64,000 bases of DNA from Oopsacas minuta (Eukaryota > Animalia > Porifera). Below, in pieces: positions 2,741-41,600 of this stretch. The notes below the pieces were generated by a model. That model was not told the origin of the DNA. It did not search any database and saw only the letters and a program-made list of their open reading frames with translations. The stretch lies in the NCBI GenBank assembly GCA_024704765.1, contig JAKMXF010000188.1:615015-679014 (forward strand). The letters run 5' to 3'. The first letter of the stretch is position 1. The number at the start of each line of letters is the position of its first letter. Position numbers and translations under genes: made by a program.

Positions 2741-2980
2741 AAAGCCCTGTAATTTGCATTTGTTATAGAATTTGTCCTAAAGTAAAATTAAGTTATGGAA
2801 TTTATCCTACATGTAATCTCTCTATTTTGAAAACTTACATTTTATCTCCGCGAATAAGATACTCATCCTCATCAAGCGATCTGTACAATGTTTTACGAAA
2901 GCGATAGTGCACTTAACAATCACAAAGATTAAGATTCCGAAATTTCACTACTAGGGGTAAGCAGACTTGAATATAAGGTT
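2678..2980. mobile_element. MITE-like element with perfect 27-bp inverted repeats
   Basis: AACCTTATATTCAAGTCTGCTTACCCC (2678-2704) and its exact reverse complement (2954-2980). No clear TSD. Confidence 0.65.
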
Positions 2981-4910: not shown

Positions 4911-5614
4911 CAAAGGATATATATTTAATAGAGTGTATTGACCAATAGAATTACAGTCTACATGAATACAAATACATTACAGTGTTAAAATTCGCATACG
5001 CCTAGATGAAATCCTGGACCAAGGTTTGATCCAAGTTGGCCAACTGCAAAAACGTTAATGCACACCAATGGTAAGCCACTGTATTTATGAAAGGGGGTAA
5101 GAATCGGACGCAACAGGTCAGCTTTATAGAACTTGACTGGGACGTTGAATGTTCCCATTTAGGTTAGACCGTTTGAGTGAACAGGATAAATATATTCCAT
5201 TAGCTTTGTATTATCTGAACCAATAGAATTAACTCTGAATTCAATAGAAATCCTTTAATCCTTGGCTCAGGAAATAATTGGGTATATAGGCATTATATCA
5301 CTTAGGTAACAGTTAGATATATATTTAAAGGAATATTAGAATTACATAATAATCACCTTAGCACGAACACATATTATGAGAATATTGTTAAAGTTTGACG
5401 CCATTTACACCAAGTCATTGATGCAATATGTTTAGTTGTGTTGTGTTGTGTTGTATTTTGTTTCGTAATGGTTCATGTTGAATTTCTGCTTGCTAGGTGC
5501 TGTTGTTCTACCGCCTAATATAATGATAATACTCTATTTTTAGTTTCCGTAACCTAATTTAGCTCAGTAGATTGTACACATAACTACATAATAAGGAAAG
5601 GCGCAATAAAATCA

Positions 5615-8600
5615 ATGGTCCTACAGCAGATTCTAATTCTGCTTCTGGTATTCAGTCCCACTCTAACCGTCAGCACAGATATTGCTACTCCATTCTGTGT
5701 AGGTTCGCAGTATGAATACTCATATTCTTCTGAGGTAAGCATAAACAGACTATAGATTTCATTGCTATGTAATTATCACACTTTTTACCAAACGTCTCGT
5801 ACGAAAATAAATTGAAATCCAAGATAACAAATGTGTTAAATAGTCTGAATACATATTCAATTACATCCTCATACCTGGAAATTCTTTATTTTAAACCGGC
5901 TAGGTTGGATAAAGTGTGAACAACAGTTGATAATGTACTGTTAATAACATAGTATTAATTGACAGATTGTCATTTACAGATAACGTTGAATCAAGTGGAT
6001 AAATTCAACTTCAATGCAAAAGCTTTCCTCTTCGCATATGGAATGAGTCAGTGTGAAGAGACAGAAGGAGTTCTGATGAGAGTAGATCTATTTGGAGTTC
6101 TTAACTGCACAGCTGTACAAGTTATACTAACTGATGCTAAATTAGTTAGTGTAGAGGCTAAACAACATGGTCATGATATAATTGAACATCAAATGAACTT
6201 AACTCAATGGTTTTCTTTTTATCAGAGACAAGATGGACTTATCAGGTTTGTAATATTAACTGACATTATAATTACATAAATTAGAATAGTTAGTTCTAAA
6301 TTGAGTTTCTATAGCAAGGTACGCTATCCAGAAGAAGAAGAGAGAGCAGTATTGCAGCTTAAGAAAGCAGTGACAAGCTCTTTCTCTCTCAGATTGCATG
6401 AATATGTTAGGAAAAAGGGAACTGACAAATATGGAGGATGGGCATACCGTGTACCTGACTTGGATCACTCAGGGACTCACTCTGCTAGGTAAGTAACCCT
6501 ACAATACTCGTATACGTGTACGACTGTACGTATATTCGAAATGAAAAGCAAGAGCATAGAGAGACAGAGGTAGTGAACCCTCAAGATCACTGAATCATGT
6601 CCATTATGCATATAGTGACTTCTCAAAGCAATCGAATAAATAGTAACTCACTATATTAGCTATATTTTATTGGGTAAATTCTACTGAAACTGTTCATAAC
6701 TATAATCTATCATCTTTCAACTAAATTATCATTAAATGTCCTAATTTCAACTCTCTACACCAAATTAGAGCTGGATCAAAGTGATATTAGTCCCAGTACG
6801 CTTAATAAATCATTATTCACTTATTCATCAATTGCTTTTATACTAGTGAGGCGGATATGTCGACTAAATTACTTTTAACATACGTATTAGTACGTTTTTT
6901 AGTATTTATTATGATGAATGATGAATATAATACAATGGAACTCGTTATTAGCAACTCGTATTTTGCATGAATTTCTGTTGCTAATAGGGTAACATAATCA
7001 ATACAAAATCTATACTTGGAACCTGAAAGTAGGTTGCTAATATGCGAATATAGTCGAAATCCGAGTTTTCTTACTATGTTTTTATGCTCAGAGGTCAAGA
7101 ATGTGGTATTTACATACATTTTCTATCGGTTTATTCTTACTACTGTTTTTTTTACCTAATTTTCCTGCAAAATAGTAAGAAAAACGGTTTCGACTGTATT
7201 GCAATTAACCGAGTTGCTAATAAGCAAACTCTATTGTAGATGGATTTCATTCGGTTGTCTAGTCGAGATGAAATACTTCCTTAAATCTCTTCTTTAAGTG
7301 ATAAACTATGACAATAAATTTCACTGCCGCCAATGAAGATTTTGCCTGTAGTATGAAAATTCAATAAAGAATATTCTAAATGTACAAAATTGAACTGATC
7401 CGGAAATATTAGATACATTGTACAGGACTCCAAGCCTAGAATAATTTTATGCACATAAAGCCCTAGATCTTATCTTGCGATATAAATATTTATATACAAT
7501 TCGTTTCCATTGGAATACTGTGCAGTTGTTAGTTCTTATAGATATATTCTTGCTGTTCACTTTTTACTAAAATGGGGGCGTCTAAAGTAGATATAGCTTA
7601 GGGCCAGGGCCACAGTATGAGTCTAACCTAGACAAATACAATTATCCCTAGAGAATAGGTATAATTTCTAAGTTACATGAAAGAATTGAGAAAATATAAG
7701 ATTTAGAAATAGGTCTATCATAATTGAAGAGCATAATTGTTAGAGATAATTAGCTGGTACAGTATTGCATTTATTAATTAAAACATTATCGGTCTTAATT
7801 ATATAGTGTTAGATTATTACGCTAATACAATGCTACAGTAATGTCTAATTCTTATCATAACTATTAGAGAAGTACCATATTTTTCACCTTTTCACTGCAT
7901 CTTTATACTGAGTACTAAGTCGATATTAACATGTAATCACTATATTGAATATCAAGATTAACAATATCAAGCAGACAATAATTGAGTAACAACATACCTA
8001 TTCCTTTTGTAGTCATTTCATATGGATCCAACAGACTTACCCACATGACCACTGAATTAATTAAATTTTAAACAGAATGAGAAACCATTGAACTCAAATT
8101 GTTCCTTGTAAGTGAATAATATAAAGATATAATAAATATTGATTAAGTTATGTAAAGTAATATTCAGTGTAACTTCGATTAATCTGACTGGTTGGGACCT
8201 GTCAAAGCGTCCGGATAATCAAGGTCGTTTATACACAGTAAAATAGGACTTGGGGGTCAGGGGGCATGTCCGGATAATCAAGGTTGCACTGTAATTGTTT
8301 CTCATCTCCGCCAATCCCAAATTTTATTCCACGTCAGAAAAAACAAATATTTTATAAGCTGTATATAGCTATCGCAACTAGTGGCGTAGCCAGCCTTGGT
8401 ATAGTGCTGACGCAGAGGTAGCGCAAATACAGTACTTGCCACTGAGATCAACTATATTATAGTAAAGTTTTCTTAATTAGCTTTTCTATCTTGGAGGGAA
8501 GGTCTTATTGGATTAATTAAAACTCACTTAAATTTCTAATGAGGGTAGTGCAGTAACTACCCCCCGCGAGACTGCTATCGGGGGATGGGCAAGGTGTTTT

Positions 8601-11600
8601 CACCGGTTTAACAGGAGCATGCTCAGTGGTGGATCTATAAATTTTAGTTGGGTATAACGATCCAACTTGGAAATGGCGTCGTGTGGCTTTGATACCTGGG
8701 GAGAAAATATCCAGGGAAACAGATACAAAGGTTTGGTAAGTATGAGTATGTCATGTTTTAAACGTTTGCCTCTTTTATGAGAAACATTTTTAGTGTGTTA
8801 AATCTAAACTATGAAATCTCCAGAGAACCCCTGAAAGGTTAAAATTATGGAAAAATAAGAACTAGGGCATAGAATAGATTCAATAATGCTTAATTGTTGT
8901 TTTATGATCCTGAAACACAATAGCCCTGCTCCAAATAAATCCCTGAACTCATAGCAGGTATGGTATCTATTTATAATAGAGTAATTGACCATTGACTGAG
9001 GGTAGAATATCGCCCTCCTACATTTCTGGGCATATGCGATTATCCTACGCCTGTGTTCTAGAGTAATCTAAATTTAGTAAAAATTATACTTGTAGATATG
9101 ACGTAAAAGAAGACAGTAAGATGGTTACCTACAGCAAGATACATAATGATTTTGAGAATGATCACACTCGCAGAAAAGACATACATATCATGAAAGAAAC
9201 TGGTATATACATAATCGTATTTCTTGCATAGTTGTCAACTTTGTAAAAATCTATCTGAGATTCGTTTAAGATGAATTGGATTTAACTAGCTATTGTAACG
9301 AAATAAATAGTTAGTAGGATATCTTCCCACCATAATGGCATAATATTGTTCATTTAGTTATGAATCATTGTAAAAATTTCATTACATAATTATCCCTAGA
9401 ATAATTTTAGTGAGAAGGTTAATTTGAAAGTGAGATTATGTTTAAATACTTGAGTCTCACTTTGGATCTGTGAGACAACTATGTTTTGACAAATTTCTCG
9501 TTGTATATTTATGTAGATATCTTCTTGGTCAAAATATATATTAGATAACTGAATTTGGAATAGGTCCCAGCGCCCCTCAATAAACCAAGGGTCCCGATGA
9601 CATGATTTTGACCAAATACAAACTGATTATATTATTATTATTATTAGTCCCGCAGAACTTGAGCTAGGGTATGCATTGTAGTCCATAGTTTATTTTACGA
9701 TAGTCCGACCCGTATTGAACCCATTTCCACTTGATAGCCCTTTGTAAGAAATGGGCATTTCACAATAATGTGTCACATTTGGATGCATTTCAAGTTATTA
9801 AATGCATATAACTCCCTCAGTTTAAACCGAAATGAATTCTTATGTCTATATTCGTAATCAGCCAAAGATTTCACGATTGAGTGGTCTCGAATATGTTTGG
9901 GAATAATTTCCCAAACAACGCAGGAATCTATCAAAATTGCATTTTCAAAATTTGTCCAAACTCTATCGAGTGACCCCTTGTTTGACTCATGTAGGCTAAT
10001 TGAGTCTACTCATATACATATCGACCCTCCAAATGAGCTTTAAACATCATTTTATTAGACCAACCTCCGCGATCACTCAATTCTACTTTGGTCGAACCAT
10101 ATTGGAGCAATAATTACAGTAGAACGTCAGTTATCTAAACATGATGTGACTGAAGGGGGTTCGGATAATTGATATTCTATTACATTATATGCAAGATGTG
10201 ACTAGATGACTTACAATGTAAATATTACTAGTTCACTTCGCTTGGTCGCGCTGCGCATGGGGCTCGGCACTTCGTGTCTCGCATTGAACAAAGTATAAAA
10301 GTAGCAACATAATCACAATACGTGGGTGATAAATTCATATTTGTAATCAGCATTACCCTATTATAACGGTTGTAAGCAAGTTTCTAGGATTAATTAAAAA
10401 ATTGTTTACTTTATACACCTAAAAAACAACAAACATTCACAATACGTAGTTGAAAATATCATATTCAGATTCAGTGTACTTGATAACCCCTATGTATCTG
10501 TTGAGAGCAAGTCTCTAAGTATATTTCGAGATTCAACTTTTTGTTTACTCTACGTATAATCATAAAAACAACAATAAATATTAACTTGAAAATGCGAAAT
10601 TCGGAATCAACATGTTCGATTATCCTAATGTATTGTTTACTTTTCCTATATCGTTAACAGAAGGATATGTTATTCCCTATAAAATATATACGCAGATCTT
10701 CTTCCCTTATCACTATAATACAAAGTGGACAAACACACAACCCCACAATAATTGAGTTTTAATAATATCGATTGGTCTTTTCACCAGGTCACATCAATTC
10801 AATTCAAGTATTGGATAAAGCTGATATAACGAATTCAGCTCAGAAATATCGCTCCAAAGAAGATCCTCCTCCTATAAAAGCTTCTGGAATCGCACACATT
10901 AATCTGATAACTAAAACTAGCTTCGACCCTGCTTCTATCACTGAGCCATCTGGTCTAATTCTAGACAGTATCATAGCTCAGAGAGTGATCAAGGATCCTT
11001 TATCTTACAGCAAAGCTAGTTCAAAGGTATAACTTAATACAATGATGTAGTATATTATCGTCTATGTTATAAACAAATTTACTCTCCAAGTGCCATACTA
11101 AGAGTTCCTAATTCACCACAACACAATTTGCTATGAAACGCACAGTACACATTTGCACATCATTATTCGAAACCAACAAATTCGTCAATGTTTGTTAAAA
11201 TATCAACAAATTTGACATATTTCTATTTTCATTCAGGTTTATTCAAAGCTCTCTCTGACAGAGAACTGCTACCCTAATATCAAAGATACAGATTGTGTTA
11301 AGACAATTAGAGAGATTGTTAACATAATAGAGTTGATGAGAGATGAAGATATTGAGCGGTTAGCAACTAGGTTTCTGTCTTGTCCTCTAACGAGCAGACT
11401 GGAATATGTGTTTGCTATAATTGATGCATTCGGTATGTGTAGCAGGGCCTCCTGTCATGTCGCTCTTGTTACATTCCTTAATACCAGCTGTATCGAGAGA
11501 GAGATGGCAATCAGTATACTACCACACCTCGCTACTTTTAAATTACCATCTCTATTTGCTATTGATATTCTGGACCAGTTAGCATTCCATCCCACCCATT

Positions 11601-14600
11601 TTCCAATACAACTACATAACCACACACTCTCTAACATGGCTGTTCTAGCTCTAGGCTCAATGAGTGCTACTCTGAAAGAATCTGATCCTCTGCTCTCTAA
11701 TAAGATAATAAATAAGTTACACAGAATGACACTACCACATGACCATGACAGGTTAGATGTTATCATTTGCATATATGAATATAAACATTCGTTAATAATA
11801 ACAATTGCCCCCACCCCCTTTGTAGGAATAGTATCCAAAAATTCTTTGGAATTCTGTGGTTTTTGCTTATAATGGTTTTACATTATACAGTGAAACCCTG
11901 CTAACGCCCACCCTGAAATAGCAGCCATAAATTCGGTCCCAAGGTGACCATAATTCTGAGCTTCCACTGTCGTATATTCTTATACACTATTGCTATTCTA
12001 ATGTGCTACTAAGTATACAATTGACTTCGCTTAATCGGGGAGACCGGTTAATGAATTGGGTACTCTGATTAAAAGCGACCAAAATCTTGAATACATTAGT
12101 CACTTTTATGCGGAGTCAACAATACCCTGCCTGAATAAATGTATTCAGCCACTGGTAAAATTCCCATACAAATACGTAGTACTAATCTCGTCTATCCTTG
12201 AGGGGCAATACAGTAAAACTGTAAGATATAGAGAATATCAATGTCAATCCGATTGTTCAAGTTTTCAAACAAACAACCATGGCTATGGACCACATTTGGA
12301 TTGGTAATTTGCCAACCGGACTAACTTCATTGGCTGATAATTATCTAGGTTAAAAGTCAGCTGACAAATTGAAAACTGCTTACCGTCTGTATCTAAGTTA
12401 AATTAACTAAATTGAGAGTTCACATTGGTTGTTAGCGGTTTGAATTATCTGTTACTGCAATATTTCGGTTTTAAGCTCAAATAACTGCAAAGCTAAACAA
12501 TTAATTGCTTAGAAAATTGTAGCTGTTAATAGCATTTTCACCATCCCCGTATATTAGAGCTAAATTTGTTATTGCAGACGTGATAAAATAGCACTGTTGT
12601 ATGAAATTCATAGTACCATGAGATTTCCCTACCTTAGGGAGCATTAGGAATGTATTTGTTGCAGGCCAAATACGTTTGGCCTAGCTGAAGCATTCTCTAA
12701 TTCTCATGGGTGACTATTTATATACGTATATTTGGGGCTAATTAATCAACAAATGACTTTTCCTTTTAATGTGGGCTTCTCTATCTACCGAACGAAAAGA
12801 AGGAGATTGGCTTGATGAATGTTTAACATACTGTATTACCATCTTGTAAGCCTTGAAAATTTCAAATTTTTAGAGTTCTTGAAATACATTTCAACTTTGT
12901 TATGAATGTCTACATTTCCGTATTCCAATAATATCTATTGTCATTTGCCAAATTGCAGCTTGCATCTCTGGGCTATATTAGGTGATACATTTATTTCTGC
13001 AAAAGGGAGGTAGCCATGGTAACATGACTAATATCCAATTCGGCTGACATTTGAACATAAGGGTTGACTCCCCTGACCGTCGACATTTAATGATCATTCG
13101 ATTAATAGAATTCATTAATTACAGATACAGAAGAGAGAATTCTGTCGACTCTGAAAACAAGCTCTCGAGTAAGAGTACTGGCCTGAGGAGACAATCTAGC
13201 TTGATAGACTCATTGGGTAATGCAGCTAATGAAAATAGTTTCAACTTCCTAAAGAGTTATATAGAGTCAGAACACGCTCCATCTATTCTACGGAGATCTG
13301 CGATTCACTCAATGAGGCAATATGACACCGATGAGGTTCGAACAAATTGATGTATAAATTGTATTCATAAATGAGGTCATTTCCACCAAATGTTATATGT
13401 GGTATGGTTGAATCCTTACTACAATGCTTCCATTGAGTTGTCTTTTTTTCAATACTAATGGATATTATTCATCGATATATTAGTACTAGGGATTACAATC
13501 CTGGGATTTCGGGATTGATATTTGGGATTCAGAATATTTCCAATCCCTGGATTTTCGGGATTGTATCTAGCGAACAAATTTTGTAAATGTCAATTAGGAA
13601 AATTTGGAGAAGGAAGATACATATCTAATTTGAAACTTGGCAAACACAAACATAATATTCTGAATTTATGATGTAGTAATATGAATTTAAATAACTACTT
13701 TTTATTGTTCCTAATTAAGCAAAGGGTATTTAATGTTGTGTCGCTTAGTATCGTAACATTTGATTATTGGAGAAAACCTATTTATAGCTTAGTGATACAA
13801 GTACTTGTAATCGTCCTATATTCTTGTTGTTATTTAACACTCACTACTGTAAGTTACCATTGTAAATTGGTTATCGTTTTTCAAGCACGGACAGAGACAT
13901 CATAATAGGCCACAGGGTAAACTGACCGTGCTGCTATAAAACTATTGGTCTCTACAATTTTTTGGTAGAGCAAAATTGATCCTATTATTTTGCCAAATTA
14001 GGTACGAAAAAGATTTACCTTAAATAGAGCTAATTCATAAAATAAAATTCTCAACAACCCGAAAATGTGCAAAGAGATAGTGGTACAACATGTAGAGTGC
14101 GGCTATATTAACTCTGATCCAACTGTAATACTCGTGTGATATTATTATTTATCACAGGCAAGGACGTCGCCAGGATTTTTCAGCTAGGGGGGGCACGAAG
14201 TTTTCCAAGGGGCATGACAATGGGCAAGGTGTTTCACGAGTTTAGCAGGAGCATGCCCAGTGGCGGATCAATAAATTGCGTCGTGTGGCTTTGATATATG
14301 GGGGGCACAAATTTAATCTGGTTGTCAACAAGTTCTAGATGTTTCCTACCAGATTGAATTTGTGCACCCCAGATTTCAAAGCCTTTGGGCGCTGTAAACA
14401 ATCAGTAAGGTCCAAGAGCCAAACAATTGAAAGAGATAACGTTTGGTCTGCAATTGCCCCAGAAAGTTTTTTTTCTGGTCGAGTAATGTGCATCTCGGAG
14501 AATATTTAGGGGGCCCCAGTCACATATCACGACGCTACTGCAGCTGGGGGTCTGATGTGATGTAGGTCTTCCAGTCGTGACGGGGCGTAGCCCTTGGACA

Positions 14601-17600
14601 ATAAGTTATAATAGCTACCAGGCTTGGACCGGGTCATGATTTCCTGACCCGGTAGAAAAGGTTGAAACCTCTGACCCGGTGACCCGGTTTCGTTATTTGA
14701 CCCGGTTTTTCAAAACATTAATTTTCTATGTTCATGCGATTTGATAACGATTAGATTTTACTAAGTTTTAATATCCAGGGATTTGGCAATTAAAATCCAG
14801 GGAAATTTGTAGAAGGGGTTGATAAGTCTGAACAAGGCATAGTGTTTTAAAACTCGCCTAGGGTCCTAATAGTTAAAGTTGGGTTATATAGCAGCTGGGG
14901 CCCTAGTGTTTTCTGTTAGCACCATATTTTTGTTCCAGAAGTCCTGAAAATATGTTCTGATTTTGATATATGAAATTTACTATATTTAAGTAACGCTAAG
15001 AACAAATTATAATTATGATTAATGGAGATAAAGATTAGAAATATAATTGGAGATATACTAAGTGAAGTCTGTCATATTATCTTCTTTTTCAATGCATCAT
15101 TAAGAAGAACTAACCCTTCCACTGTATCTGGATTCAATTTTGCCCGATCTTTCCTCGTACCGCGACCGGCAGAACTAAAGTGGCGTTCCGATTCAGCCGA
15201 ACTAGCCTGAATTACTAAAAATGACTGTGACAGGAAACTGGGAATTGGGAATCTGCAACTGTGTTCCCCCCGCCACTTTATAGGATCAAAGATATCTTCA
15301 TCATATTGGATGGAAATGATCTTTTCATAGTCTGTTAATTCTGATCTCAAATTTTCTTCATTCCAATTCGTATAATTATTAGTTGAAACTGTAGTACTAA
15401 AGTTCCTAAAGCATAAAAGTGGATCTAATCTGTTACTTTTAGGAGCTGATGGCAGAAGAGGTTCATCTACCTGATTTTCCTGAATTTGGAATTGTGGGGG
15501 AGGAATTAATTTCTCTTTAAATGCAAGTATAATACCTTCTCTTGCAGTTTTAATGAAAATGATGCGATCTTGTTTATTCTTCACGAATAGAAATGATTTT
15601 AGTGTAGGATAGAGGTAAGTTGCAATAAAATGGATAGAATTTAGAGATGTCTACACCTTTTGTACAAGTTCTTCTGTCATTATTCGTTTCAGAATACGTG
15701 TTAATGGATCATCATCTGTTTCTATTTCCCAAGCATTTTGAAGAGCATAATATGAAGGTGCCACATTCTGAATACTAGCTATAGATCCAAATTCGAGGAT
15801 ATCAAATATACGATTAAGTTTTTCAAAAAACTTCGTGACGATAGCCAAAAGATTCAAGTCTATTCCTGCAACAATGTAAACCTTATTCTTCTCTGTTAAT
15901 ATGTCTGATAACTTTCCATATGACTGCAAAATCGAGTTAAACATTGAGTAAAGACTTCTCCATGGCCTTGTCTTACCACCTCTTTTCAGTGATATAGGTA
16001 GTTCCGATTGAATTCCAGATGATTTTTTGCAAATGTAACTGCCTTATTAACGTCTTCATGAAGCTGGTCGAGTTCCTCATTTTCCATCATAGCTCGTTCC
16101 CATCCAGTTTTAATCGCGGTATTAATTCTGTGACAGGCACAATCTATCCTAATCTTTTGTGCAGTAGCAGCCACCATATTTGCTCCCTTGTCTGTTGTAA
16201 CAGGAGTATTAACAGGATCACAATATACTTCTGTTAAAATTTGATCTAGTTCCAACTCAATATTTTCAGAGGTTTTTAATTTGGAAAAAACTTTGCAAGC
16301 ATACATAGCGCGTTTGAGGGTCCATAATTCTTTACCAATATCACTCTCATCCGTACCCTGTGAAATCCAGAAAAAGGAAACATCTAGGTAACTTCGATTC
16401 ATAACATTATCTGTCCAAAGATCTGTTGTGAAAGCAACAGCATCCCTCTGTATTGGATCTTGGAGTCTAGAACAAATATCTTGTTTGATAGTAATGATCT
16501 GTTCAACTGTTGATTTTGATATAGCCTTTCGTCCAGGAAGTATATTAGAAGCACTCACATTACCATATTTAGCACCAATTCTGATCATTTCTTGAGAGAA
16601 AAGGATGAATTGTGGATTTCCAATGGTATTAAATGACAAAAATGCCCCCGCAACGAAATTCTACTAGAGATAAGAATTTTTGAGCATCCTGTTTATTTAT
16701 AATCCTTAGAACTTCTATTAAGAAGAGACGTGATTCTAACCTGTGAGGATGATGATACATCTGGACTACAATGTCGTGTGTGATCATTCAAATTCTTTGT
16801 TCCATAATCAATAATCTTACCACTGTCCATTTTCATTTTATCAATAATGCATTTGAGACAATGGTTACAGCATGATACTCCAAAAATAATGTTTCCGTTA
16901 TCGTTCAAAACTTCTGAAAAATATTTCCAACAAGTACTTATGTTCAAACGTGTGGAAGATTTTACTTTTAAGGTATAAATCTCATTTTCAACTTTCTTAC
17001 TAATACCAGCACAATCCATCTCTAAACATACAAAAGTATATTACATATCTATATACGTACATAAGAGTATATATGTATATAAGTATACAGTAGTAATGAT
17101 ACCAAACAAGTTAGTAAAATACTAATGATTCATGAAAATGAAACGTGTAACTAGTATTGACTGAATCTTTATGATTTACAAACCGTTATAATTTAATTAT
17201 CTATAAAGATATAAACCGGGTCAAGTCAAAATCAGTGACCCGGTTCAGACCCGGTAATTTATTTAAAATAGTGACCCGGTTGACCCGATGACCCGGTTTA
17301 TTCGTGACCCGGTCCAAGCCTGAGTGACACACATTATACTTCTTACATTTAGTATATTCAGAAAAATTATGATTTCGGAAGAATATGGCAAAAGGACTCA
17401 AACCCATATTACGATGGTTTGGGGCATGTACTTAAACTTTTAAAGGGCTTAACCCCTTGCCTGGAATAAATAATTAAATAAATAAATAATATTATACGGG
17501 TATTACAGTTGAAGCAGACTAAGTAGTAAGGGCTTGTAGAATAAACTGGGAACAAATGAGATACGTACATTTATCTGTAAAAATTAATTGCTAAACTTTA

Positions 17601-20600
17601 ATAATATAATTTCATTAGAATTTACCTAAATTTAGATAAAATTTTACAACTGCCCGAAACAGAACTTTTTGCTCTCATTCATCAACTTCGATCCAGGTAG
17701 TAAGATTGGGGGGTAGCCCCCAATTCAAATAGTATCTTCAGGGAAAATGGGGGAACTCCCCCTAAATAGAGCCCTACAATACTTACATACCAACTCCTTG
17801 TAACTGTTTGACTGGATATTTTTCTCAAATCCCTGAATTTTCAAGATATTCCCTAGATTTATAATTTAATATGCAAATAATATGGATTTCCCCCTTTTAT
17901 GAGAAAATATGCCAGATATTTCCAATATTTTCCCTAGATTTAGTAATTTCCCCCTTAATCCTGAGTCAAATAATCCTTGGATAATCCAGGGATCACTGGA
18001 TGGTTGGCAAGAATGAAATGTTATGTCGATTTTGTCAAATAAATGGATGGCATATTTTGATCAATCTTTCCCAATAACTTGACGACATTTTAGAGGAGTA
18101 GCAGCAAAAAAAGATTTTTGATGGTAGCCTCTCAAAATACATTCAGTTTTCTACTAATTCGAAATATAATAGATATTTTCAATATTATTGGAGGGGTCAG
18201 GCCCACCAGCGCTACGCCCACGGGTGTACCGGATGTTACATTTCCGTTGTTCGGAGGCAAAGACTAGTACTTAAAATAGGATCAATAACGGTCTACTATT
18301 GACTTTCAGAGTAGTTCGATACGTAGAAGCTGCATTTCTATTAGACATATGCTCAATCTAGTCCGTGTGACGAGGTATCCCATAGTTCAGGGGTTGCCCT
18401 CTATTTGGAAGGGCTTTTAGGAAGGTTTCACTGTATTCCTGTACAAATCACATTGGAAAAGTTAAAAATGTCCAGCAGACAGACTGGTAGTGGAGCTCAG
18501 GTTTGTGTATTTTTGTTCTTTTCAGGGCGGCAAGCACCCCCTGACCTCCCGTGCTGATGTCGACATGCACCAGATCCCGACTGATTTTGGGATGCTGGAT
18601 CTGATAAATATTTCAGGATATTCAATATTATTCATCCCCTACTGAACTTCATGTTCCATCCTCAAATCCTATGGATAAAATTCTAAATAATTATACTACA
18701 ATTACCACCTATCTAACTTTTGAAAAGAAATCTCTAGCATCAATTTGAAATGTGCAAAAAGGTGTGAAAATATAATTAATCATATAGATATAAATTTGAA
18801 AATGTTAATTTTGTAACCTAATGCTCGATTACCCCTAACTAGCAGTTAAAACGAAATCTCAAGCATGATTTTGAATAATATGCAAAAAGGTATGAAAATG
18901 TGATTAATCATAAGACAGATCTGTGAATTTGTAACTTTCAGACTCTCAAAATCTCAAAATCGGACTACGCTCCCAATTACCCTGACTAAATGTTGAAACC
19001 TAATCTCTAGCTTGCTTTTGAATTTTCATGCAAAGGTGTCAAAATATGATTAATCACCAAAAGGTGTGAAATATTCACTTTAGAAAAATTCATATCCGAG
19101 TGCCGATCTCAGACCCGAAATGCATATATATACCAATTTTCACGTAAATCTGAGTGTTGGATTTGCACGACAGTGCAGACGAACTGACTTACGGACGTCG
19201 CACATCGTCTATGCCATTAGGCCATCTTCCTAATGGAGCTTCACAAAAAATTGATCCTGCCTAGAATTCTTTTAGAATTAGAGTTAATTCATCAAAAGTA
19301 CTATGGGGACCATTTTTGGCTGGCCAAATTTTGTCTCCCGGACCAATTGTGGCGTGACAGAGCTACATAAACTTTATTTGATCTATGGGTGGGGATAGTG
19401 AGATCCGAGTATTTACAGCTAGATATATTTAACCGTATGTTCTATCTGGAATTGTTAATTGCGATCTCCGATTATGTGCAGGTTTTATGCTTGATAGCAT
19501 GTACTAGGCTAAGTGTCGCTTCCTCCCTTCCCATATTCATAAATATATGTGTTATAGTGGTGTATTTGTACAGGCAGCAGATGTCATATTATCCTCTGCA
19601 CTGATAGACAGAGAAGAGATAGTTCGCTATGAGGCAACATTACAATATATTAGACATCCCAAAGCCGATGAAATGTCAGATATCCTATCTGACTATTATA
19701 ACTACACAAAGGTCCAGCAATCTCCAGCCGGAGCAACAAATCGTAGAATCAGGAGGTTTAACATATTCAATGCTTTATCGTTCCATCTACAATCTCCAAG
19801 TTTTAATTGGAGGAAACAAATTGGGAGCGATGAATTTGGTGCTTCAATGGGTCTCATTATACGTAATGTAGTGGAGCTTGATATCAAGCCATTGTCTGGA
19901 AAATTTGAGGTTGATGTTCATAATGAAGCCTATTTCGTTGCATACATTACCTATATTAATTTAAGATTTGATATCTTTCGTGCCAGGGTTTGCTTTAAGG
20001 GGTACATCGCATATAATTTTAATATTCTGCAAGAATTTGGCATTAACTCATTTAGTGATCTAGCGAACATCTACGATAGAACAATAGGCGCTGTGGTAAC
20101 ACCAATTAAACAAGCAGTGGAGAGTTTTCGAGGAGCTTATGGCGACGTAGATGTTAGTTACATATTTGATAGACTTGTGGATGCTGTTTCTGAATTACCA
20201 TTTATCATTGATAATCTCGTGGTTTCTCCAACATTACGTAGAATCCTCCAGCAGTTACAACAACTACCGTTTATCCAGAAAGGTCTCATGTTAATAGATG
20301 ATGTCAACTCATTGTATGAGGATGTAAGGAGCGATGTTTTGATGTTTTACCAAGAGATTTCTGATTGTGTAACGGTTACATTGCCTTGGGTCGGGGAAAC
20401 AGTAAAAAAATCGATCGAAACTATTGGCAAATCGATAAAAGAGTTCTTTAGAAATCCACTCACTGCAATACGTGATGTGATTGTATCTGTATTTCAGTTA
20501 AGAACTGCAATTGATGCTGTTATTGACTGTAAAGATGTTTTGATAAAATCGGCTAAATTTGAGGGAGCTCACATACGAGGTTGGATGGAGTTATTGAACC

Positions 20601-23600
20601 ACTTGGGTGAAATATACACTTCAACAATTGAGGCTAAAGAGCTAATTATGATGCAGGCACAAATATTTTCTGAAGCTAGAGATGCTTCTACTTTCGAACA
20701 AGCCACGGGACTCAATCTGACCATTTTACGAATCAAAGTCTATGAAGATCTGAGGGTTGCCCTTGATGAATTCATTCAGCCACTTTCATCCCTCCGAAAT
20801 ATAATAGATCCCTTTATTGTCGCTTTTGCAAACGCTATTCAATTAATCAAAAACACAATAAGTGCTTATGAGACCCTGAAAAACGCATTTGAGTTGGCTA
20901 GGAATCTTATTGAACAACTTTTCGGGCTTAAATTCGATCGAAGATTTCCAAGAAAGCTAAGAGGAGATGATGGATGTGAAGTGTCAAATTGCCAGTGCGG
21001 ATTTTACCCAACAACCTCTGGAAATCCAGATACATATAAGATACATACATATAAGCCAGGCATACAGCTTGAAGTTGTAGTTTTAAAAAGTTTGGTCGCA
21101 CCAACCAATGGGTTATATTTGCGAATCCCAGATGATCGAGTACTGATTTTTCCGTCTGGCTCACTTAAAAGATACGTTATAATGATACATCATGTAGCCT
21201 TGATGGATAATATCACATATGAAGGAATCAATGTGCAGAGTGGAGAAAAGATAGGTACTGTTACGGATACAGGATGTTACCCTAACTTTATCCATGTCAC
21301 TGTAATGACGAGATCTGGAAAACCCCTCGACCCATCTAGGTTTTTAAAACCACGTTCGTTAGTATTTCCGGAATGGATAGAAGAATGTAATGACTATAAG
21401 TTAGTTGTCCTAGGCGATGTGATTCGGGAAGGAGAGGTGATTGGAAAACCTGAAAAAGAGAAGAAGAAAGAACGTGGTAGTTGCACAGATGGAGAGGAGT
21501 GTACCGACGCGAATATAGCAAAAGGAGTCCGTCCTCCAAGAAAGAGAACCTCATATACACCAAAGCATCAACAATCCATTTCTAAGAATTCTAAAGCCAA
21601 AAGCAAGTTACTAGCAAATGCTACATCGAATGGACCGAATGGGCCCATGAACCACGAGATAGATACCGATCTGAAAGAATTCCTTACAAGGGAAGATATT
21701 GAAGAGTATTCCAACTCTGGAGATTTTAGTTTGGTCGTTGGTGGTGGAAGAGGGAAAGATTATAATTTTTCTGTAAACTCAATTATACTGGGAACACTCA
21801 TCGATGCTCTATCGGATTTAGACGATCCAGAGATAAATGAGGTAATAACAACTTTGGAAAATACCATTGACTGCATACGGGAGGCAGTTGAGTGTTCAAA
21901 TGACCAGTTAATTGATCCTTCCCTACTCGATCTCACTTCTATTAAGAGCTCCCTTAAAGTTAGAGGGTTATCCGCTGAGGGAGACAAGGAACAACTTTTG
22001 GCACGACTAATAGAGTTACCTACAGATCTCTGTCCTGATATTCAAGCTGCAATCCCAAGGAATCGTTGGTGCTCAATAAGCGACGATTGCTTGACATTGA
22101 AGTGTGCTGCAGCTCTCAAATTAGACTTCCTGTCCTATTCTGTAACATTCCAAATTACATTAGATCCATGTACTTCCTCCATCATGCTGAAATTTCAAGA
22201 CTTTGAGAGAGTTATTGATCTTCCTGCAATTTCTGGTGGTTTAGAGCTGAACATACCAATTGAGTCAGTTGATTTATTAGACATTGCTACTCTTAATTTG
22301 GGTGTGAAAATAGTACGAGATGACTTAAATATCTTTCTAAACTTCAAAGCTTATCTCTGTGCTCCAGATACGACTTCTGAAGATTATTCACATTGCTTCT
22401 TTGATATTGAACTTCTAGCTAGAGCTGTATTCAAGATTCCTAGCCCGTTCAATTGTAACTCGAATGAGAGGAAAAGAGAGACTAGAGAGATTGAAACAAG
22501 TGATGTGACTTCATGTGGCATACATATCCCAGATTTTAGTAATATGACCCTTGCTGAGTTTGTTACCTACATCAAAGATCTTGGGGATATAGGATCAGCT
22601 GGTGCCTCAACTACTAACATCAACCAACTTATGCAAGACCTGAGGAATGTGTTTCTGACTGATTTGTTGGATTCAATAATTAGTGGTGAGAGTACAATTT
22701 CAGGTGAAGAGACTGATTTCCCGACTACCTTTGATATTTGTGTTATGGGATCTTTTGGAGTCCAAAAAGTCAGAAACTTTTTCACCAAAGGTCGGATTGT
22801 AATTATCGGATTTGTTCCAGTGAGTTTCCTAATTAGTCTGGATGGATTTTATGGTGTTGACTTAAACCTGAAATTGTGTTTTATAACCATGGCTGCTTCT
22901 GCGGAGGTAATACCAAGAACTGGTCTAATTTTAACGGGAAGTGTTGGACTTTCGATTGCCATAGCTGAGGTTGGAGTAAAGTTAGTTGGAAGGATCCTTG
23001 ATACAAGTCTACCAATTCAGCCCACCATTGGGTTTAAAAAGTTTCCTCTAGCACTAAGAATTCGTATTGACTTGAAAATAATACCTCTGAGCATTTCTAT
23101 ACGTTTCTTTCTAAAAATCGAATTCACTTTATTATTTATTACGGTCTCGGAGACTCTTTTCGATCACGAAGTTTTTCACTGGAGCGCACCTGCCATCCTA
23201 ATCAATCTCTTAGATGTTACTAATGCTGAACAAGATGATTCTCCTCCCCTATTTTCACCAATTGCCGACTCGACGAGATCACGGCGCTCCCTAGCGACAC
23301 CTTGTGATGTGAGTCAGATTGTAGGAAGAGACTACACAGACCCAGCATTTTTTCTTCAGATAAACGTAGCAGATGACAAGAGTCAAGTAGAACTCACTTA
23401 CTCTGTGGGTACATATCCAGGAGGAAATGACGTAGTTAGAGATGATAGAATGAATGGCAATACTGTATTAATTGCTAGGCAATTACTATCCAGTATTCCT
23501 CTCTATTGGACAGCAAAGGCCTCCAACTCTCAGGGAGTGTCTGCCGCCAGTGAATGTAGTCTCCCAACTTATGATACTACTCTTCCAATTGGTCGAGTAG

Positions 23601-26600
23601 ATTTCATGGAGTACATATATTCCAGTCACCCGTCAATACTCATTGGAGAGACTACTATTATCGACGATACAAACTTAAAGAGACACTTACAAGCTATTGG
23701 TTATGGACTTGGTCCTTTTGGTGACCAGACAGTTGGATTCATTTCATTTGACTTCGAACCTAATACTCCCATCAGTGTGAGTGGCACGATTGAGAATTTT
23801 ATCGCAGTGTTAAACAAACGGTTAGGTGTAATACCATTCAAAGTTTCCAGTGGTAAAGAGCTCGAGGAATGTGCAACAGACTGTCTGCAATTCCCTACTA
23901 AATGCTTCTCCTTCAACTATGCACCAGTTTCTCATATATGCGAGCTACTCAATGATATTGGCGGAGATTCTAGTCTGGAATTCGCATACGATCTTCAATA
24001 CAGTTACTATGAGAAGAGGGGAGTAGGGTATCGTGCAAGTTTGAAGCATGATAACCTCCCATTAGTACACAACACACTGTACTTTCTAAATATATATCTC
24101 ATGAATGAGCTCTTGTATGAGAGGTACCTCCACTCACCAGGAATTCTCATCGACTTTACTCCACCTGAACCTGGAATGATTGTGAATGCTAGCATGAACG
24201 AGACAAGACATGATGGTTGTTCAGCTGCATTTAATCAGAGATGTGAACCTCCTCAGTATGTAACTCCACTGAAGTATCATCATGTTTTACAAGATGGCGC
24301 TGGATCTGAATGTGTGTATAATGGTCCTGTAATAGGTACTGATAAGATGTATACCAGACAGAATTCTTTCTTGAGCATAGTATTCCATGGATTTCATGAT
24401 TTAGAAAGTGGTGAGTTTGCTTGTTATTATATTACTAATAGTATACCAAAAACAGTGGAACTTGCATAATCCGATACTCGTCGGGACATGAAAATAACGT
24501 CGGATTAGTAAATTGTCGGGTTACAGTGGATACCGCTTATAAGAAATTTCTATATAGCAGTATTAACAGGCTTGCCGTGGAGATGAAATATCCCAGCCAT
24601 ACTCCATATCCATATGCATTTCTGAGCCATTTTAAGTGGATATCCATAGATATTGTTAAAACCCGAGGACTGTTAGCGTTGGGTATCCGTAGATGCCCTG
24701 TTGCTTAGACTCCTTCTTGGTACAGGTTTCCTGGTGGACTTCCACTACGGTTATGCCATTCGTTTTTATCCATTTTCTGTAGGTCAAATCGTACCACACG
24801 AATGTTTTGGAACAATATCCACATTAGAGATACATCCCGTACATGTAGAATTATAGATGTAGACTTGTCCCAGAATCTTTCGATGATCACATCGCGACTG
24901 ATCTTTGGAATTCCATATATAATTTTGTAAAGTTAATCGTCAGAACTTACGATAGGAAACTACATGACTTTGTCATGATTACTCAATTAGTATAAGTTTT
25001 CAACGATTAGGTGAAAAGAAATAGTATTACAGGCGACAACCCTTAAGGAAAACATTTGTTCGAATTAGTGAAAGTTCGAACTATTACGGGTATTCGTATT
25101 CACTGCTGTTGACTGTATAATGCATATTGCCAATTATTTGCCAATTATCGTAAATATTTGGAAGTATGGACATCTACAATATCCATGGATATGACCAAAG
25201 CTCGTTTGGCTAAAATATTTTCGGATTTTAAAGGTATCCCGGATTATTTGTGACAAAAACAAATACTTCAATGTTTGTACAGGTAAACCTCTTTTTACGC
25301 GGTAGATGCGTTCAATGATGAAAAGTCCGCTTAAAAAAATATGACAATTCTCATAGAAACACATATGAATCTTTTATAGATGCTTTTCCAAATAGATATC
25401 AAAATCATTTGTTCGAGGAACTTTAAATTGGATATACAGTCGAAATCGGGGTATTTCGCCTCCCTGGGTATTATTGCAATTGCTTGTTTCTCCTTAATAC
25501 TATTTAATTACAAAACGAATTTAGTATATTTGCTACCGGTTTTTTGCGTATCGGGGTTTTTTTGCTGCCTTGATCATGTAAAAAATTGCCTCTCTGTTTC
25601 TTGCCCTCTTACAAGTGTCAAGTGATCCAAAACTCCCGATTTCGATTGCAGTTTCATTGGTCAACATTATTGAACATTGATAATTGAGTTACTATACTTA
25701 AATTATTATTTTTGTTGTCTCTGTACTACATACATTAATTCGACGGACGTAAAGACTAAGAAATTTCACCTTCTAAGCAACTATTGCTTTAGTGGTTGAA
25801 AAGGCGGTTTTTTGCCTCATTTTCCGTGCATTTTGGGGAAAAAACCGATTTCGACTGTATTTGAGAATAATGTTTGAATTCAGAATCTGGAAATAGGAAT
25901 CGTATAATTATATACGTATAATCATTTCTAGATGTTCTCATATTGTATTTATTATATCAGATAGCTTAATATTCGAATTCGTCCTTATCTTAGAGCTCAA
26001 CGAACACGTTACTTTCGAATACGAACAGTTCGTACTTCGTAACCAAGGAAAAGTTTGTCATTGATTTTTGTGTCATCAACAATATTTATGTGAATTGTTC
26101 CCTTCCAGATGCATTATTTCGTTTTTTCGATTTGAGTGTTGAAAATATTCCAAATGCTAAATCGGTTGATGCATAGTAGAAATGTTTAGCTTTGTAGCAT
26201 TTTGTGAATTAATTAATTAATGAAATTTGCAAGGCCGCGGAAAATGGAATTGTACTATAACCCAGCTGCTAAGACCTTAATATTAGGCGAATTGTTCATT
26301 TTTTGAAGAAAGTGACATTTTTGGTCCAGATATAGCTTATGGCATCTTAATTTGATAGGAAAGGGGACCCACTCTGGATCTTCCCTATTTCGGGAAAAAT
26401 TTCCCCAAATGTTGACATAATGGCCGCAGGGCGACAAATTTGCACTTGAATTATTCCAAAACGATTTGATGGATCGAATAGGTCAAAAAAGCAAAATTCT
26501 ATTACATTGTGCTATCTTACCAGAAAAACAGCTTTCGTGATGACTAGAAATCATTTGAGAAAGTTATACAGATATTTGAATATTCCCCCAGTGTCTGGAC

Positions 26601-38600: not shown

Positions 38601-41600
38601 GAGAAGGTTCGGTAACCATTCAGCATCTCATCACCTACACAGACATAGAACATGACACTGTGAATATCAGTCTGACATCTGTCACATTCACACGAGCTTC
38701 TTCTGAGTACTCTCTTGCTGAAGATGGGACAAGTTTATTGAATGCTGAAATAAATGGAAACATATTTTACTTCACTCCTTGTAGTGGTTGTTATGGCAAC
38801 CTATCCGTGCAGTACTCACTAACAGAGACAGGTAATCCAATGTATATGTTGCTTGTACAGGAATATATACCTCGAACGATCTGTATCACTTTTGTCTATT
38901 AGCTAAATTAAATATATTTCAGAGTTGGAAAAAATCAAACAAAATCAGATTATTTCGAGTGGGTTTACACACCCTTATTTTGCCAATTATTTAAACCAAT
39001 CTACAGTAAACTCTCGTTGTACTGAAGTGCTGGGAGCCTCGGTTTCATTTCATTATGATCGGAGTTTGTTGTAACCTGAGTACGTTAATGCACAATTGTT
39101 TGTAAAATAATGTCAATAATAGCGGAAGTCTTTTATCTAAGTTCGTTAAATCCGGAGTTTATGTAATAAAATATCAATTTGAGCGGTATTAGTTCAACTG
39201 GGGTTGTTATCAGCGGATTTCGTTATAACGAGATGAAATTCAATAGCTTTTGACATAAAGGGGATAACAAATAACTTGGTTATAAGCAGAATTTCGTTGT
39301 ATCCTTCCATGTATTTGTTATAAACGAAGTTTTATAATGTAATTAGATGGAAGGATTTAGGACCATTAGACCACTTCGTGATAACGGGAGTTTACTGTAT
39401 ATTATCAAATTGCCATTTTTGCCTGTTTGTTTGTTTGTCTATTTGTCCGTTGTCAAAGAAAGGATTTATGGAATGTTGTATCGAATTCGAATTTCTCAAT
39501 ATGAGATGTTGCATAACTATGTATTTATCGTTTATACCAAAAGTAAACAGAATTCAATATAACTTAACTAAATAAATCGAATGTGCTGAATCTGATTTCC
39601 ACACTTTTGAATTAGTCATATGTAAATTTATTGTTATTTTATGAATAGAAAGAAAATAATTTCTTGAGATGCCACAATAATAGTAGAGACTTGCTCTTAA
39701 CTGCTACAATGGCTTAACAAAGTACGCTGAATCCGAATTTCGCATTTTCAAGTTTTCATATTTGTGATCTAGGAAATTCTTTGATTCTATATACATATAT
39801 TCCCATCAGGTACTCCTTCATTACTTGGCACTCCATTGTATGCAGATAATGAATTCCTCATCGAGATACTATCAGTTAATGAAAATCCTAAACTAATGAT
39901 AGACCAGGAAAATGTCAATTCCCTCATTACTCTATACAGGACAGATAATACCTCAGTAGTTACCCTACAACTCACAGGATATAGTTATGATGTGGATGAT
40001 GGAGATTATGTGTATTTCAGGTAAGATAATTCAGCATTTGAAATATGAAATCAAATTAATATTGCATACCAGAATGAGTATTGTCATTTAATACTTCCTC
40101 AGGTATCTAAACTGTTCATACTGTAAACTAGTAGTGAGCGAGATTTCTCCCTCTTCCAACCCAAACATATCTGCTCAATACACAACTTCAAGTAGAAATT
40201 TCTCTCTTAACTACACAGCTCTAGCGTACTACTATGGGACAGACCAATTTGGAATTGTATCATTGGACAGATTTGGTGCATTCTCTCTAGCTTACATTAT
40301 AGTAATCTCTATAAGATTTAAACCCTGTCTTAATGACGCAACTTGTAAGGTATGTGAGGGAGGCATCGAATTGTAGTATTTGAATATTTGCTGAGTGTAA
40401 AGAACTGTGAAATTAGAATTTAGAAAATCATGTTGTATCTTCATAAAATTTTCTTTTCATTTAGGGCCCAAATAATGATCCTGATTGTAGCAAAATTATT
40501 GAAATCGAAGACTTCTCCAGTGAGTATTCATGTGAGTGTACGGAAGAATGGGCACTGAGGAGATGTGATAAACCCAATCTCTGTCTCTCTCAGCCCTGTC
40601 ACTATAACGCCACCTGTCAGATTAAAGAGAATGGAGATTATGAGTGTTTATGTGAACCTGGATGGCGTTGTTCTCAGATCTTAACTCCAGGAGAAATATC
40701 TGCTGTCGTATTATCAATTGTGATTATTCTGCTAATTATAGCAGTTGTGAGTCTTATAGTGTGCGTCTATCTTATGCAGAAAAGGAAGGGAGTGTACAAT
40801 ATCGGGATTGCGTAAGTACTTAAACAGTAATTACATTATCTTCATAGACAGTATATATGTCTATGAAAATAATGTAATTACATAATTTATCACATGATTA
40901 TTTATATTTACTGTGCCGACTATACTTTAGTATAGTCAGCACAGTATTGAAATGGTTCCCTTTTTGTATTGCTTTTAGTATAGCATTTTTGCTGAAAATA
41001 AATGAAAATATTCATTATATAGCATTATGTCATCGGTAATAATTCAATTGTTCTTAGATGTTAAATCTAAATTTAACGGTAGCTTTAATTATTTATATTA
41101 TATTTATGAATAAAATATTTTTAAAATTAACCATGGATAATTTATAAACATGTATTTCTCCGATTATATAACCTTGGAATAATCGTAGGAGATTGTTCTA
41201 AACAGCAAAAGGGGGTAATTCAATACGCTGATTCCGAATCTGACACTCTTGAATTTGTACCGATCAAATCTTCTCCAGTATTCCCTTCTATTAATATTAT
41301 TTAGTCAACTGATAATTATTGCAAACAAATTGAACATTATATGAATTGGATATTCATAGTAAATTGTAAATATATTGTATGGTGGATTTCCCCCCGCGAA
41401 AAGAACAAAAAAATTACAACCTGTGCAGACAGCTTAGTCTATTAAATTCAATTTGTTTAAAAAGTGGCACTATTAATTGAAGGCACCAAGTGTAATGAGA
41501 TTAAACCTAACCTTTCATAGTGCCTCCAATTAATAGTGCCACTTTTTAAACAGATTGAATTTAATAGACTAAGTGGCACTTGGCGTCCGATTTGATTAGT

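Follow-up and report, generated by a model that had tools for sequence, protein, structure and literature searches.

The plus strand of a 64,000-nucleotide window of the glass sponge Oopsacas minuta genome (GenBank assembly GCA_024704765.1, contig JAKMXF010000188.1, here C188) encodes, at window positions 5615-20930, the N-terminus of a single gene product, with its signal peptide and roughly the first 1,000 residues. This part contains the N-terminal fold of the large lipid transfer (LLT) proteins (LLTPs) vitellogenin, apoB and MTP and is the head of a type I membrane glycoprotein some 5,200 residues long, whose gene extends from 5615 to about 42748. The original prediction had described the stretch as an LLT module with apolipoprotein-like amphipathic helices at the tip of a membrane-anchored protein, tethered or furin-released, and hence as an unusual lipoprotein design. 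The fold is genuine, and we consider it probable that this head of a giant tethered surface protein is a furin-processed binding or sensing module and not a lipid-loaded particle.

Gene model and transcription

The O. minuta protein LOD99_10427 (P0010) served as reference for the gene model. It maps to contig C35 at 92-100% identity and is 55-60% identical to the window gene, and is therefore a paralogue and not the orthologue. A tblastn search with P0010 returned seven short exons and one giant exon, colinear on the plus strand, and the borders read in the sequence are canonical (GT..AG) with consistent phases at all seven introns (Table 1). Exons 1-7 together encode 544 residues. The coding sequence is interrupted by introns, and the G+C content of the window is 32-40%. 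All motifs quoted in the original prediction were found again on the plus strand: F-x-x-G-x-x-Y-x-Y-x-Y reads F-C-V-G-S-Q-Y-E-Y-S-Y (about 5690-5734), VLQLKKAVTS, AVLALGSM and LIDSLGNA lie in exons 3, 6 and 7, respectively, and the 38-residue helix given as an example is located at 20810-20923 in exon 8.

Four public sequencing runs from a single sample were aligned to window positions 5600-11599. Run X1, which we term RNA-like from its behaviour as the kind of run is not recorded, showed a depth of about 206 on exons compared to 0-6 on introns; runs X2-X4 cover the introns, as DNA does. A single X1 contig of 1,250 nucleotides joins exons 2-3-4-5-6 exactly at the predicted borders and a separate X1 joint connects exon 1 to exon 2, so that five of the seven junctions were confirmed in all. 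Exon 6 contains 26 residues skipped in the P0010 gene model, and the X1 contig runs unbroken through them.

An LLT-type fold in the head

The window gene was scanned exon by exon with the Vitellogenin_N profile PF01347 (Pfam gathering cut-off 24 bits), and the fold of the head was assessed on P0010 and relatives of the family. The profile search proposed in the original prediction gave scores above the cut-off in P0010 (30.6-35 bits) and in 35 of the 56 aligned family rows (E 0.001 or better, best 8e-20). Patiria P0014 and the chytrid protein SPPG_08216 reached 62.7 and 44.5 bits, and Branchiostoma P0015 matches profile positions 1-164, which correspond to the barrel. Exon 7 is the only single exon of the window with a Vitellogenin_N signal (E 0.065, 12.2 bits, profile positions 482-522). 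Its L-G-N-A motif is invariant in alignment A1, consisting of sponge, mussel, starfish and amphioxus proteins.

An AlphaFold2 model of P0010 residues 1-1100 was built on the 56-row alignment and reached a mean pLDDT (predicted local distance difference test) of 77, with about 90 over residues 30-560. Residues ~25-600 are predicted to form the N-terminal fold of vitellogenin, apoB and MTP, in which a two-layer superhelix comes after a beta-barrel. In the model, strands at residues 35-289 build the barrel around a helix at 143-155, and 17 helices follow at 302-569. The 11 best Foldseek matches of this model in the PDB were all LLTPs (E 1e-12 to 1e-7), among them MTP (6i7s, E 1.2e-12), lipovitellin (1lsh, 3.2e-12), bee vitellogenin and apoB-100. 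The seven best matches obtained with VIA-align were all LLTPs, too, with Z scores of 17-21.5 over 297-478 residues: the apoB barrel 9bd8 (Z 21.5, 297 residues), apoB 9bd1 (Z 21.4), lipovitellin 1lsh (Z 21.1, model residues 30-564 on chain residues 17-614), MTP 6i7s (Z 19.1), bee vitellogenin 9ens and 9enr (Z 18.7 and 18.4) and MTP 8eoj (Z 17.1). The rows after these were generic HEAT-like repeats with Z 14.6 or lower. Hence both a profile match and the proposed structural match to lipovitellin and MTP, whose absence the original prediction had named as counter-evidence to itself, were found in the paralogue and the family, and, judged by Pfam and by structure in these relatives, the barrel plus alpha-helical domain claimed for exons 1-8 is genuine.

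As in known LLTPs (1LSH, 9ENR; 9BD1, 9BD8, 9E9R; 6I7S), the signal peptide is directly followed by the F-x-x-G-x-x-Y-x-Y-x-Y strand, the beta-barrel contains an internal helix, and the two-layer superhelix of about 17 helices carries L-G-N-A. Unlike LLTPs, the family lacks the open C- and A-sheets (PF09172), DUF1081 and the von Willebrand D domain, and it reaches beyond animals. Furthermore, the module heads a protein of ~5,200 residues that also carries fn3-like repeats, EGF domains and a transmembrane helix, whereas the LLTP carriers are soluble.

Paralogues and spread of the family

Searches of the 61.5-Mb O. minuta genome (365 contigs, with the window at C188:615015-679014) revealed four paralogues of the family, including the window gene (Table 1). 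A genome scan with PF01347 gave no further locus beyond these four.

A word search with Patiria P0014 returned five proteins, and an exhaustive profile search was used instead. It yielded 1,178 proteins at E 0.001 or better, 97 of them at 1e-30 or better and many about 5,000 residues long. Among chordates and hemichordates, members were found in Branchiostoma (5,244-5,363 residues) and Saccoglossus, among molluscs in Haliotis (5,123 residues), Ylistrum, Argopecten, Potamilus, Batillaria and Mytilus, and among echinoderms in Patiria, Anneissia and Antedon. The octocoral Paramuricea provides a cnidarian member. Outside animals the family is present in Capsaspora (CAOG_009637, 4,741 residues), in the choanoflagellate Salpingoeca urceolata and in the chytrids Spizellomyces, Geranomyces and Phlyctochytrium; the chytrid protein P0068 aligns to P0010 residues 121-1083, i.e. 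to the whole head. From chytrids, Capsaspora and the choanoflagellate to amphioxus, the proteins share a conserved head of ~1,100 residues with fn3-like repeats and EGF domains behind it, and some members show a membrane anchor. The design regarded as unusual in the original prediction is accordingly not an oddity of sponges, it is the conserved layout of an old family. All members are filed as 'uncharacterized' or were named automatically, and no paper on this family was found in the literature.

One database entry carries a different name. P0207 of Paramuricea clavata (CAB3990220.1, 5,019 residues) is filed as 'DNA double-strand break repair Rad50 ATPase, partial', but belongs to the same 90%-identity cluster as the family member P0151, and the Rad50 name is probably a misannotation. 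The same profile search also returned metagenome proteins with other unusual Vitellogenin_N architectures (P0145, P0161 and P0167): Vitellogenin_N (87 bits) with a ricin-B lectin, Vitellogenin_N with fn3 and Ig-like domains, and an 847-residue protein with Vitellogenin_N only, on contigs of up to 129 kb.

Membrane anchor and full-length gene

The claim of a membrane-anchored protein was confirmed by an exon encoding an EGF-like domain and a single hydrophobic helix of ~24 residues with a basic stop-transfer stretch (Table 1). The final frame ends with ...ETIL at 42748, and the colinear frames sum to about 5,200 residues. Saccoglossus P0039 (hemichordate, 4,932 residues) is colinear with window positions 19538-40674, stopping just before its own transmembrane helix, which lies 185 residues from the C-terminus. 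The giant proteins of Haliotis, Ylistrum and Branchiostoma are colinear with the window up to about 36800.

It is very improbable that exons 1-7 are a separate small gene or a decaying copy that does not belong to the membrane-anchored giant. Such a reading would fit with the missing read support for junctions from exon 6 onward (reads were examined over 5600-11599 only), with the relic of a hAT transposon in the 6.2-kb intron 7 and with the in-frame stops in the large exon of the C35 paralogue. However, all exon frames examined are open and their splice signals canonical, and exons 1-6 are expressed and spliced in the RNA-like run X1. Moreover, the ~5,000-residue proteins of Haliotis, Branchiostoma and Saccoglossus carry the same head, and the colinearity of these giants with the window extends up to the EGF exon in front of the transmembrane helix.

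Within exon 8, a strand-rich and very hydrophobic stretch (22715-23728) lies between a SAP-like motif and a PAN domain. Its sequence is conserved at 23-27% identity in Capsaspora and chytrid relatives (E 1e-19 to 1e-23) and has no Pfam match.

A conserved furin-type site behind the helical domain

The sequence RRIRR, a furin-type R-x-K/R-R site, is situated in a loop between the helical domain and the following sheet that is predicted to be disordered in both AlphaFold2 models (exon 8 and P0010, pLDDT <50). Its arginines R580 and R583 (P0010 numbering) are invariant in A1. Across 41 rows, nearly every animal member has R-x-K/R-R and most of the chytrid ones have R-A-L-R, with the family site located at about residues 580-630. 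A proprotein-convertase P domain (77.8 bits) is encoded in the O. minuta genome. According to Avarre et al. 2007 (PMC1783640), furin cleaves apoLp-II/I and apolipocrustacein at RX(R/K)R around residue 725, and a potential site occupies the equivalent position in some vitellogenins.

The family thus resembles insect apolipophorin II/I and decapod apolipocrustacein (APO branch) in having an RX(R/K)R site shortly after the helical domain. In both of these proteins furin cleaves at the site, and the site described here is a putative one. Unlike in the two proteins, it is followed by a short sheet, helices and a LytM domain and not by lipid-binding sheets. A complex prediction with Patiria P0014 (residues 38-630 against 631-1030, the two sides of the furin-type site) gave a score of 0.00, which is uninformative either way.

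The suggestion of a furin release therefore holds insofar as a furin-type site exists, but the one conserved in the family is RRIRR and not the RKLR next to the 3' end of 5615-20930. RKLR was rejected as a feature of the family, being kept only in glass sponges according to the family alignment.

Short sheet, long helices and the lipid question

The window's own AlphaFold2 model comprises exon-8 residues 1-625 (pLDDT 67.5). Behind the furin-type site it shows a short sheet with strands at residues 70-73, 77-84, 88-105, 108-127 and 130-148 (exon-8 numbering) and a beta-type hydrophobic moment of 0.3-0.41, followed by predicted helices as long as 69 residues with a pLDDT of mostly 65-81. In the helical region the helical hydrophobic moment is 0.361, compared to 0.222 +/- 0.022 in shuffled sequences (z 6.2). 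The long amphipathic helices of the original prediction are therefore supported by the model, but they extend over about 290 and not 350 residues.

Their description as apolipoprotein-like did not hold. Exchangeable apolipoproteins (apoA-I/A-IV/E type, apolipophorin III) have tandem 11/22-residue amphipathic repeats with prolines between them. No 11/22-residue repeat was found in the helices, where hydrophobicity power amounts to 5.7 and 0.8 at periods 11 and 22, respectively, compared to 45-59 at periods 3.4-3.5. Prolines are spaced irregularly (32, 10, 13, 39, 24, 108, 10) and provide no regular punctuation. The Apolipoprotein profile of Pfam (PF01442) matched neither exon 8 at E 1 or better nor the 56 relatives at E 0.001 or better, and no apolipoprotein was among the best 50 matches of an exhaustive fold comparison with 48,161 chains. 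The amphipathicity of the helices is explained by their predicted arrangement as a closed bundle, which is sufficient by itself.

Regarding the sheets, both models contain only four to five strands before the helices begin. PF09172, the profile of the open sheets lining the lipid cavity, had no match among the aligned relatives at E 0.001 or better; in the O. minuta genome it had no match at E 0.1 or better, but control genomes were silent as well, which leaves the absence there unproven. A lipoprotein role is unsupported because the open beta-sheets that hold lipid were not found, and apoB truncated near the end of its N-terminal domain carries almost no lipid (PMC1783640).

These results bear on the possibility that the protein is a working lipid carrier, in which barrel, helical domain, short sheet and amphipathic helices enclose lipid, the helices acting like exchangeable apolipoproteins, and which would be a tethered or furin-shed lipoprotein. 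The genuine LLT fold agrees with it, as do the strong amphipathicity of the helices and the strands after the furin-type site, which sit where the C-sheet of lipovitellin begins and have beta-type amphipathicity; the uncertain packing of the domains in the models would allow a cavity. Given the missing PF09172 sheet, the lack of apolipoprotein features in a bundle whose closure alone accounts for its amphipathicity and the behaviour of truncated apoB, we regard such a carrier as rather unlikely. On balance, a binding head agrees better with these results than a lipid-loaded particle.

A LytM/LECT2-like barrel and the resemblance to toxins

Just past the 3' end of 5615-20930, exon-8 residues 496-612 form a barrel in the AlphaFold2 model. 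It superposes on LECT2 and LytM domains with Z 12-14, e.g. on LECT2 5b0h (Z 13.7, root-mean-square deviation (rmsd) 2.7 A, 115 of 133 residues aligned) and on the LytM domain of PrgK (Z 14.2, rmsd 1.9 A), and Foldseek template modelling (TM) scores to LytM and StM23 were 0.6-0.68. The family profile matches M23 and LECT2 in the PDB at sequence level, too. Of the zinc ligands (H-x-x-x-D and the second H of H-x-H), neither the first H nor the second H of H-x-H is kept when the profile is aligned to 5kqb. The window reads G-I-Q-L-E where G-x-D-x is expected, the aspartate of H-x-x-x-D is replaced by Q, and of H-x-H a single H remains, in I-H-V-T-V. The barrel is thus a LytM/LECT2 fold that has lost its zinc ligands.

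In the fold comparison the preceding helices matched ClyA-family toxins and designed bundles best, with Z scores of 10-12.7 for alignments of 206-242 residues. Like ClyA-family toxins (MakA, AhlB, Hbl-B, NheA, ClyA), the region is predicted to be an elongated bundle of very long helices; unlike in these toxins, identity is 5-11%, the scores are in the chance range for bundles and no hydrophobic head or beta-tongue is seen. The layout of a long helical region preceding a LytM domain without catalytic residues is shared with EnvC. The protein described here differs in being eukaryotic and extracellular with an LLT head in front, and the likeness is one of layout only. We regard the ClyA resemblance and the EnvC-like layout as leads and not as membership.

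Following these leads, the head could be directed against microbes, the barrel of the LLT module recognising microbial surfaces like that of vitellogenin, the degenerate LytM domain binding peptidoglycan and the helices being membrane-active like ClyA toxins. Such a head would have a role in prey capture or defence of filter feeders and phagotrophs. Eleven toxins of the ClyA superfamily (MakA/B/E, AhlB, Hbl-B, HblL1, NheA, SmhA, Cry6Aa, YaxB and ClyA) are among the fold matches of the helices, the LytM/LECT2 fold is well supported, Foldseek ranks EnvC (a coiled coil with a degenerate LytM domain) first for the window's exon-8 model, and the family occurs in bacterivores and suspension feeders. 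Furthermore, vitellogenin binds pathogens according to PMC8727950. Nevertheless, we consider this role unlikely: Z scores below ~13 are common for unrelated helical bundles according to the tool's own note, the secondary structure of the exon-8 model contains no evident hydrophobic beta-tongue or head, and the EnvC match has an rmsd of 35 A and TM scores of 0.15-0.26.

Proposed role of the head

We propose that a furin-type convertase of the secretory pathway cleaves the disordered loop, which corresponds in position to the cleavage site of apolipophorin II/I and apolipocrustacein. By analogy with the subunits of apoLp-II/I, the N-terminal piece would most likely stay bound to the tethered remainder. 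Since the lipid-cavity sheets are missing and cut-back apoB binds almost no lipid, the head, carried on the distal end of a long fn3 stalk, most likely acts in binding or sensing and not as a lipid-loaded particle. Candidate targets include protein ligands as well as the surfaces of microbes or lipids.

Several points weigh against this interpretation. Taken singly, the exons of the window all score below the PF01347 cut-off, and the sequence search of the PDB with the family profile, which gave M23 and LECT2, returned no LLTP. The LLT fold was modelled on the paralogue P0010, standing in for the joined exons of the window gene. The predicted TM score is 0.39-0.41 in both models, so that the packing of the domains is uncertain and a small lipid pocket between sheet and helices may exist. 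Junctions 6-7 and 7-8 and everything downstream were assigned from splice signals and colinearity only. Finally, several relatives show no C-terminal transmembrane helix, which may be real or an artefact of their gene models.

Table 1. Exons, domains and sites of the window gene and its paralogues. Positions are those of the window, for the paralogues those of the contig named.
Feature	Position	Strand	Basis and remarks
Exon 1: start codon, signal peptide, first barrel strand with F-x-x-G-x-x-Y-x-Y-x-Y	5615..5734	+	open reading frame, motif; GT donor at 5735; joint 5734->5980 in run X1; tblastn to P0010 residues 29-50
Exon 2: beta-barrel strands	5980..6245	+	tblastn to P0010 (57% identity); AG/GT borders; spliced X1 contig; family profile positions 40-113
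Exon 3: barrel helix (VLQLKKAVTS) and strands with invariant W-x-Y	6315..6488	+	tblastn; borders; X1 contig; family profile positions 111-167; invariant W176 and Y178 of alignment A1
Exon 4: barrel strands	9096..9202	+	tblastn to P0010 residues 186-228; borders; X1 joints 6488->9096 and 9202->10788
Exon 5: last barrel strands and linker to helical domain	10788..11026	+	tblastn to P0010 residues 211-309; borders; X1 joint 11026->11237
Exon 6: first two thirds of alpha-helical domain (AVLALGSM)	11237..11751	+	tblastn (54% identity); borders; X1 contig continuous over 11235-11599; family profile positions 293-470
Exon 7: helical repeats with LGNA motif	13125..13335	+	tblastn (62% identity); borders; Pfam signal; invariant L-G-N-A in A1
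Exon 8 as a whole	19574 to about 24421	+	AG acceptor at 19572-19573
Start of exon 8: last helices of LLT helical domain (conserved H-P), onset of disordered loop	19574..19741	+	helices at residues 2-47; pLDDT <50 from residue 48; invariant H550 and P551 in A1
RRIRR, furin-type R-x-K/R-R site in predicted disordered loop between helical domain and following sheet	19742..19756	+
Short sheet of four to five long strands	19781..20017	+	exon-8 residues 70-148
~290 residues of long amphipathic helices, predicted elongated bundle	20051..20923	+	exon-8 residues 160-450
Conserved F-G-x-K-x-x-x-x-F-P linker	20921..20962	+	family alignment columns
RKLR, second furin-type site, next to 3' end of 5615-20930	20951..20962	+
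Degenerate LytM/M23/LECT2-like barrel	21059..21409	+	pLDDT 85-91
EGF-like domain, single transmembrane helix, basic stop-transfer stretch	40465..40812	+	translation; Pfam EGF 29.4 bits
Paralogue, head-to-head, ~17 kb upstream of window gene	C188:592155-603524	-
Paralogue	C341:105579-111887	-
Paralogue LOD99_10427	C35:40905-54578	-	in-frame stops in large exon, skipped by its gene model

Other features of the window

The hAT transposase relic inside intron 7 (15072-17019, minus strand) is broken into four frames, one of which (170 residues) contains a hAT dimerisation domain (46.2 bits). At about 10400-10800, in intron 4, lies a high-copy repeat with a contig depth of 1,000-3,300 in the DNA-like runs, compared to about 50-140 nearby, and with many loose ends and rearranged joints in the contigs. 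Single-base differences and a 1-base insertion relative to DNA-like contigs of the same sample were detected at 11031, 11404, 11464, 11503 and 8644. They look allelic, and three of them are located in exon 6. Downstream of the giant gene, a 359-residue open frame on the plus strand (45483-46562) contains several hydrophobic segments and possibly encodes a multi-pass membrane protein.

Implications

In the literature consulted, LLTPs are regarded as a toolkit of animals that serves the transport of yolk and lipoproteins. In the family described here, their hallmark N-terminal fold heads a giant tethered protein without the lipid-holding sheets, and the same head is found in chytrids, a filasterean and a choanoflagellate. 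This LLT-fold head without lipid sheets sits on a giant surface protein that probably predates animals. As a tentative possibility, the Vitellogenin_N fold might even be older than the animal lipoproteins, and the common ancestor of fungi and animals may already have had it at the head of a giant, furin-processed fn3/EGF surface protein. If so, vitellogenin, apoB and MTP would descend from such a head by gaining open lipid-binding sheets. The four paralogues could then be the only LLT-fold genes of the glass sponge, in whose genome no canonical LLTP exon was detected, and in Capsaspora the orthologue would be a candidate for sensing, at the cell surface, the lipoprotein and lipid cue that triggers aggregation. 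The origin of the lipoprotein fold and the role of a barrel-plus-superhelix that carries no lipid become testable questions, and proteins of ~5,000 residues filed as 'uncharacterized' now have a name and a domain map wherever they occur.

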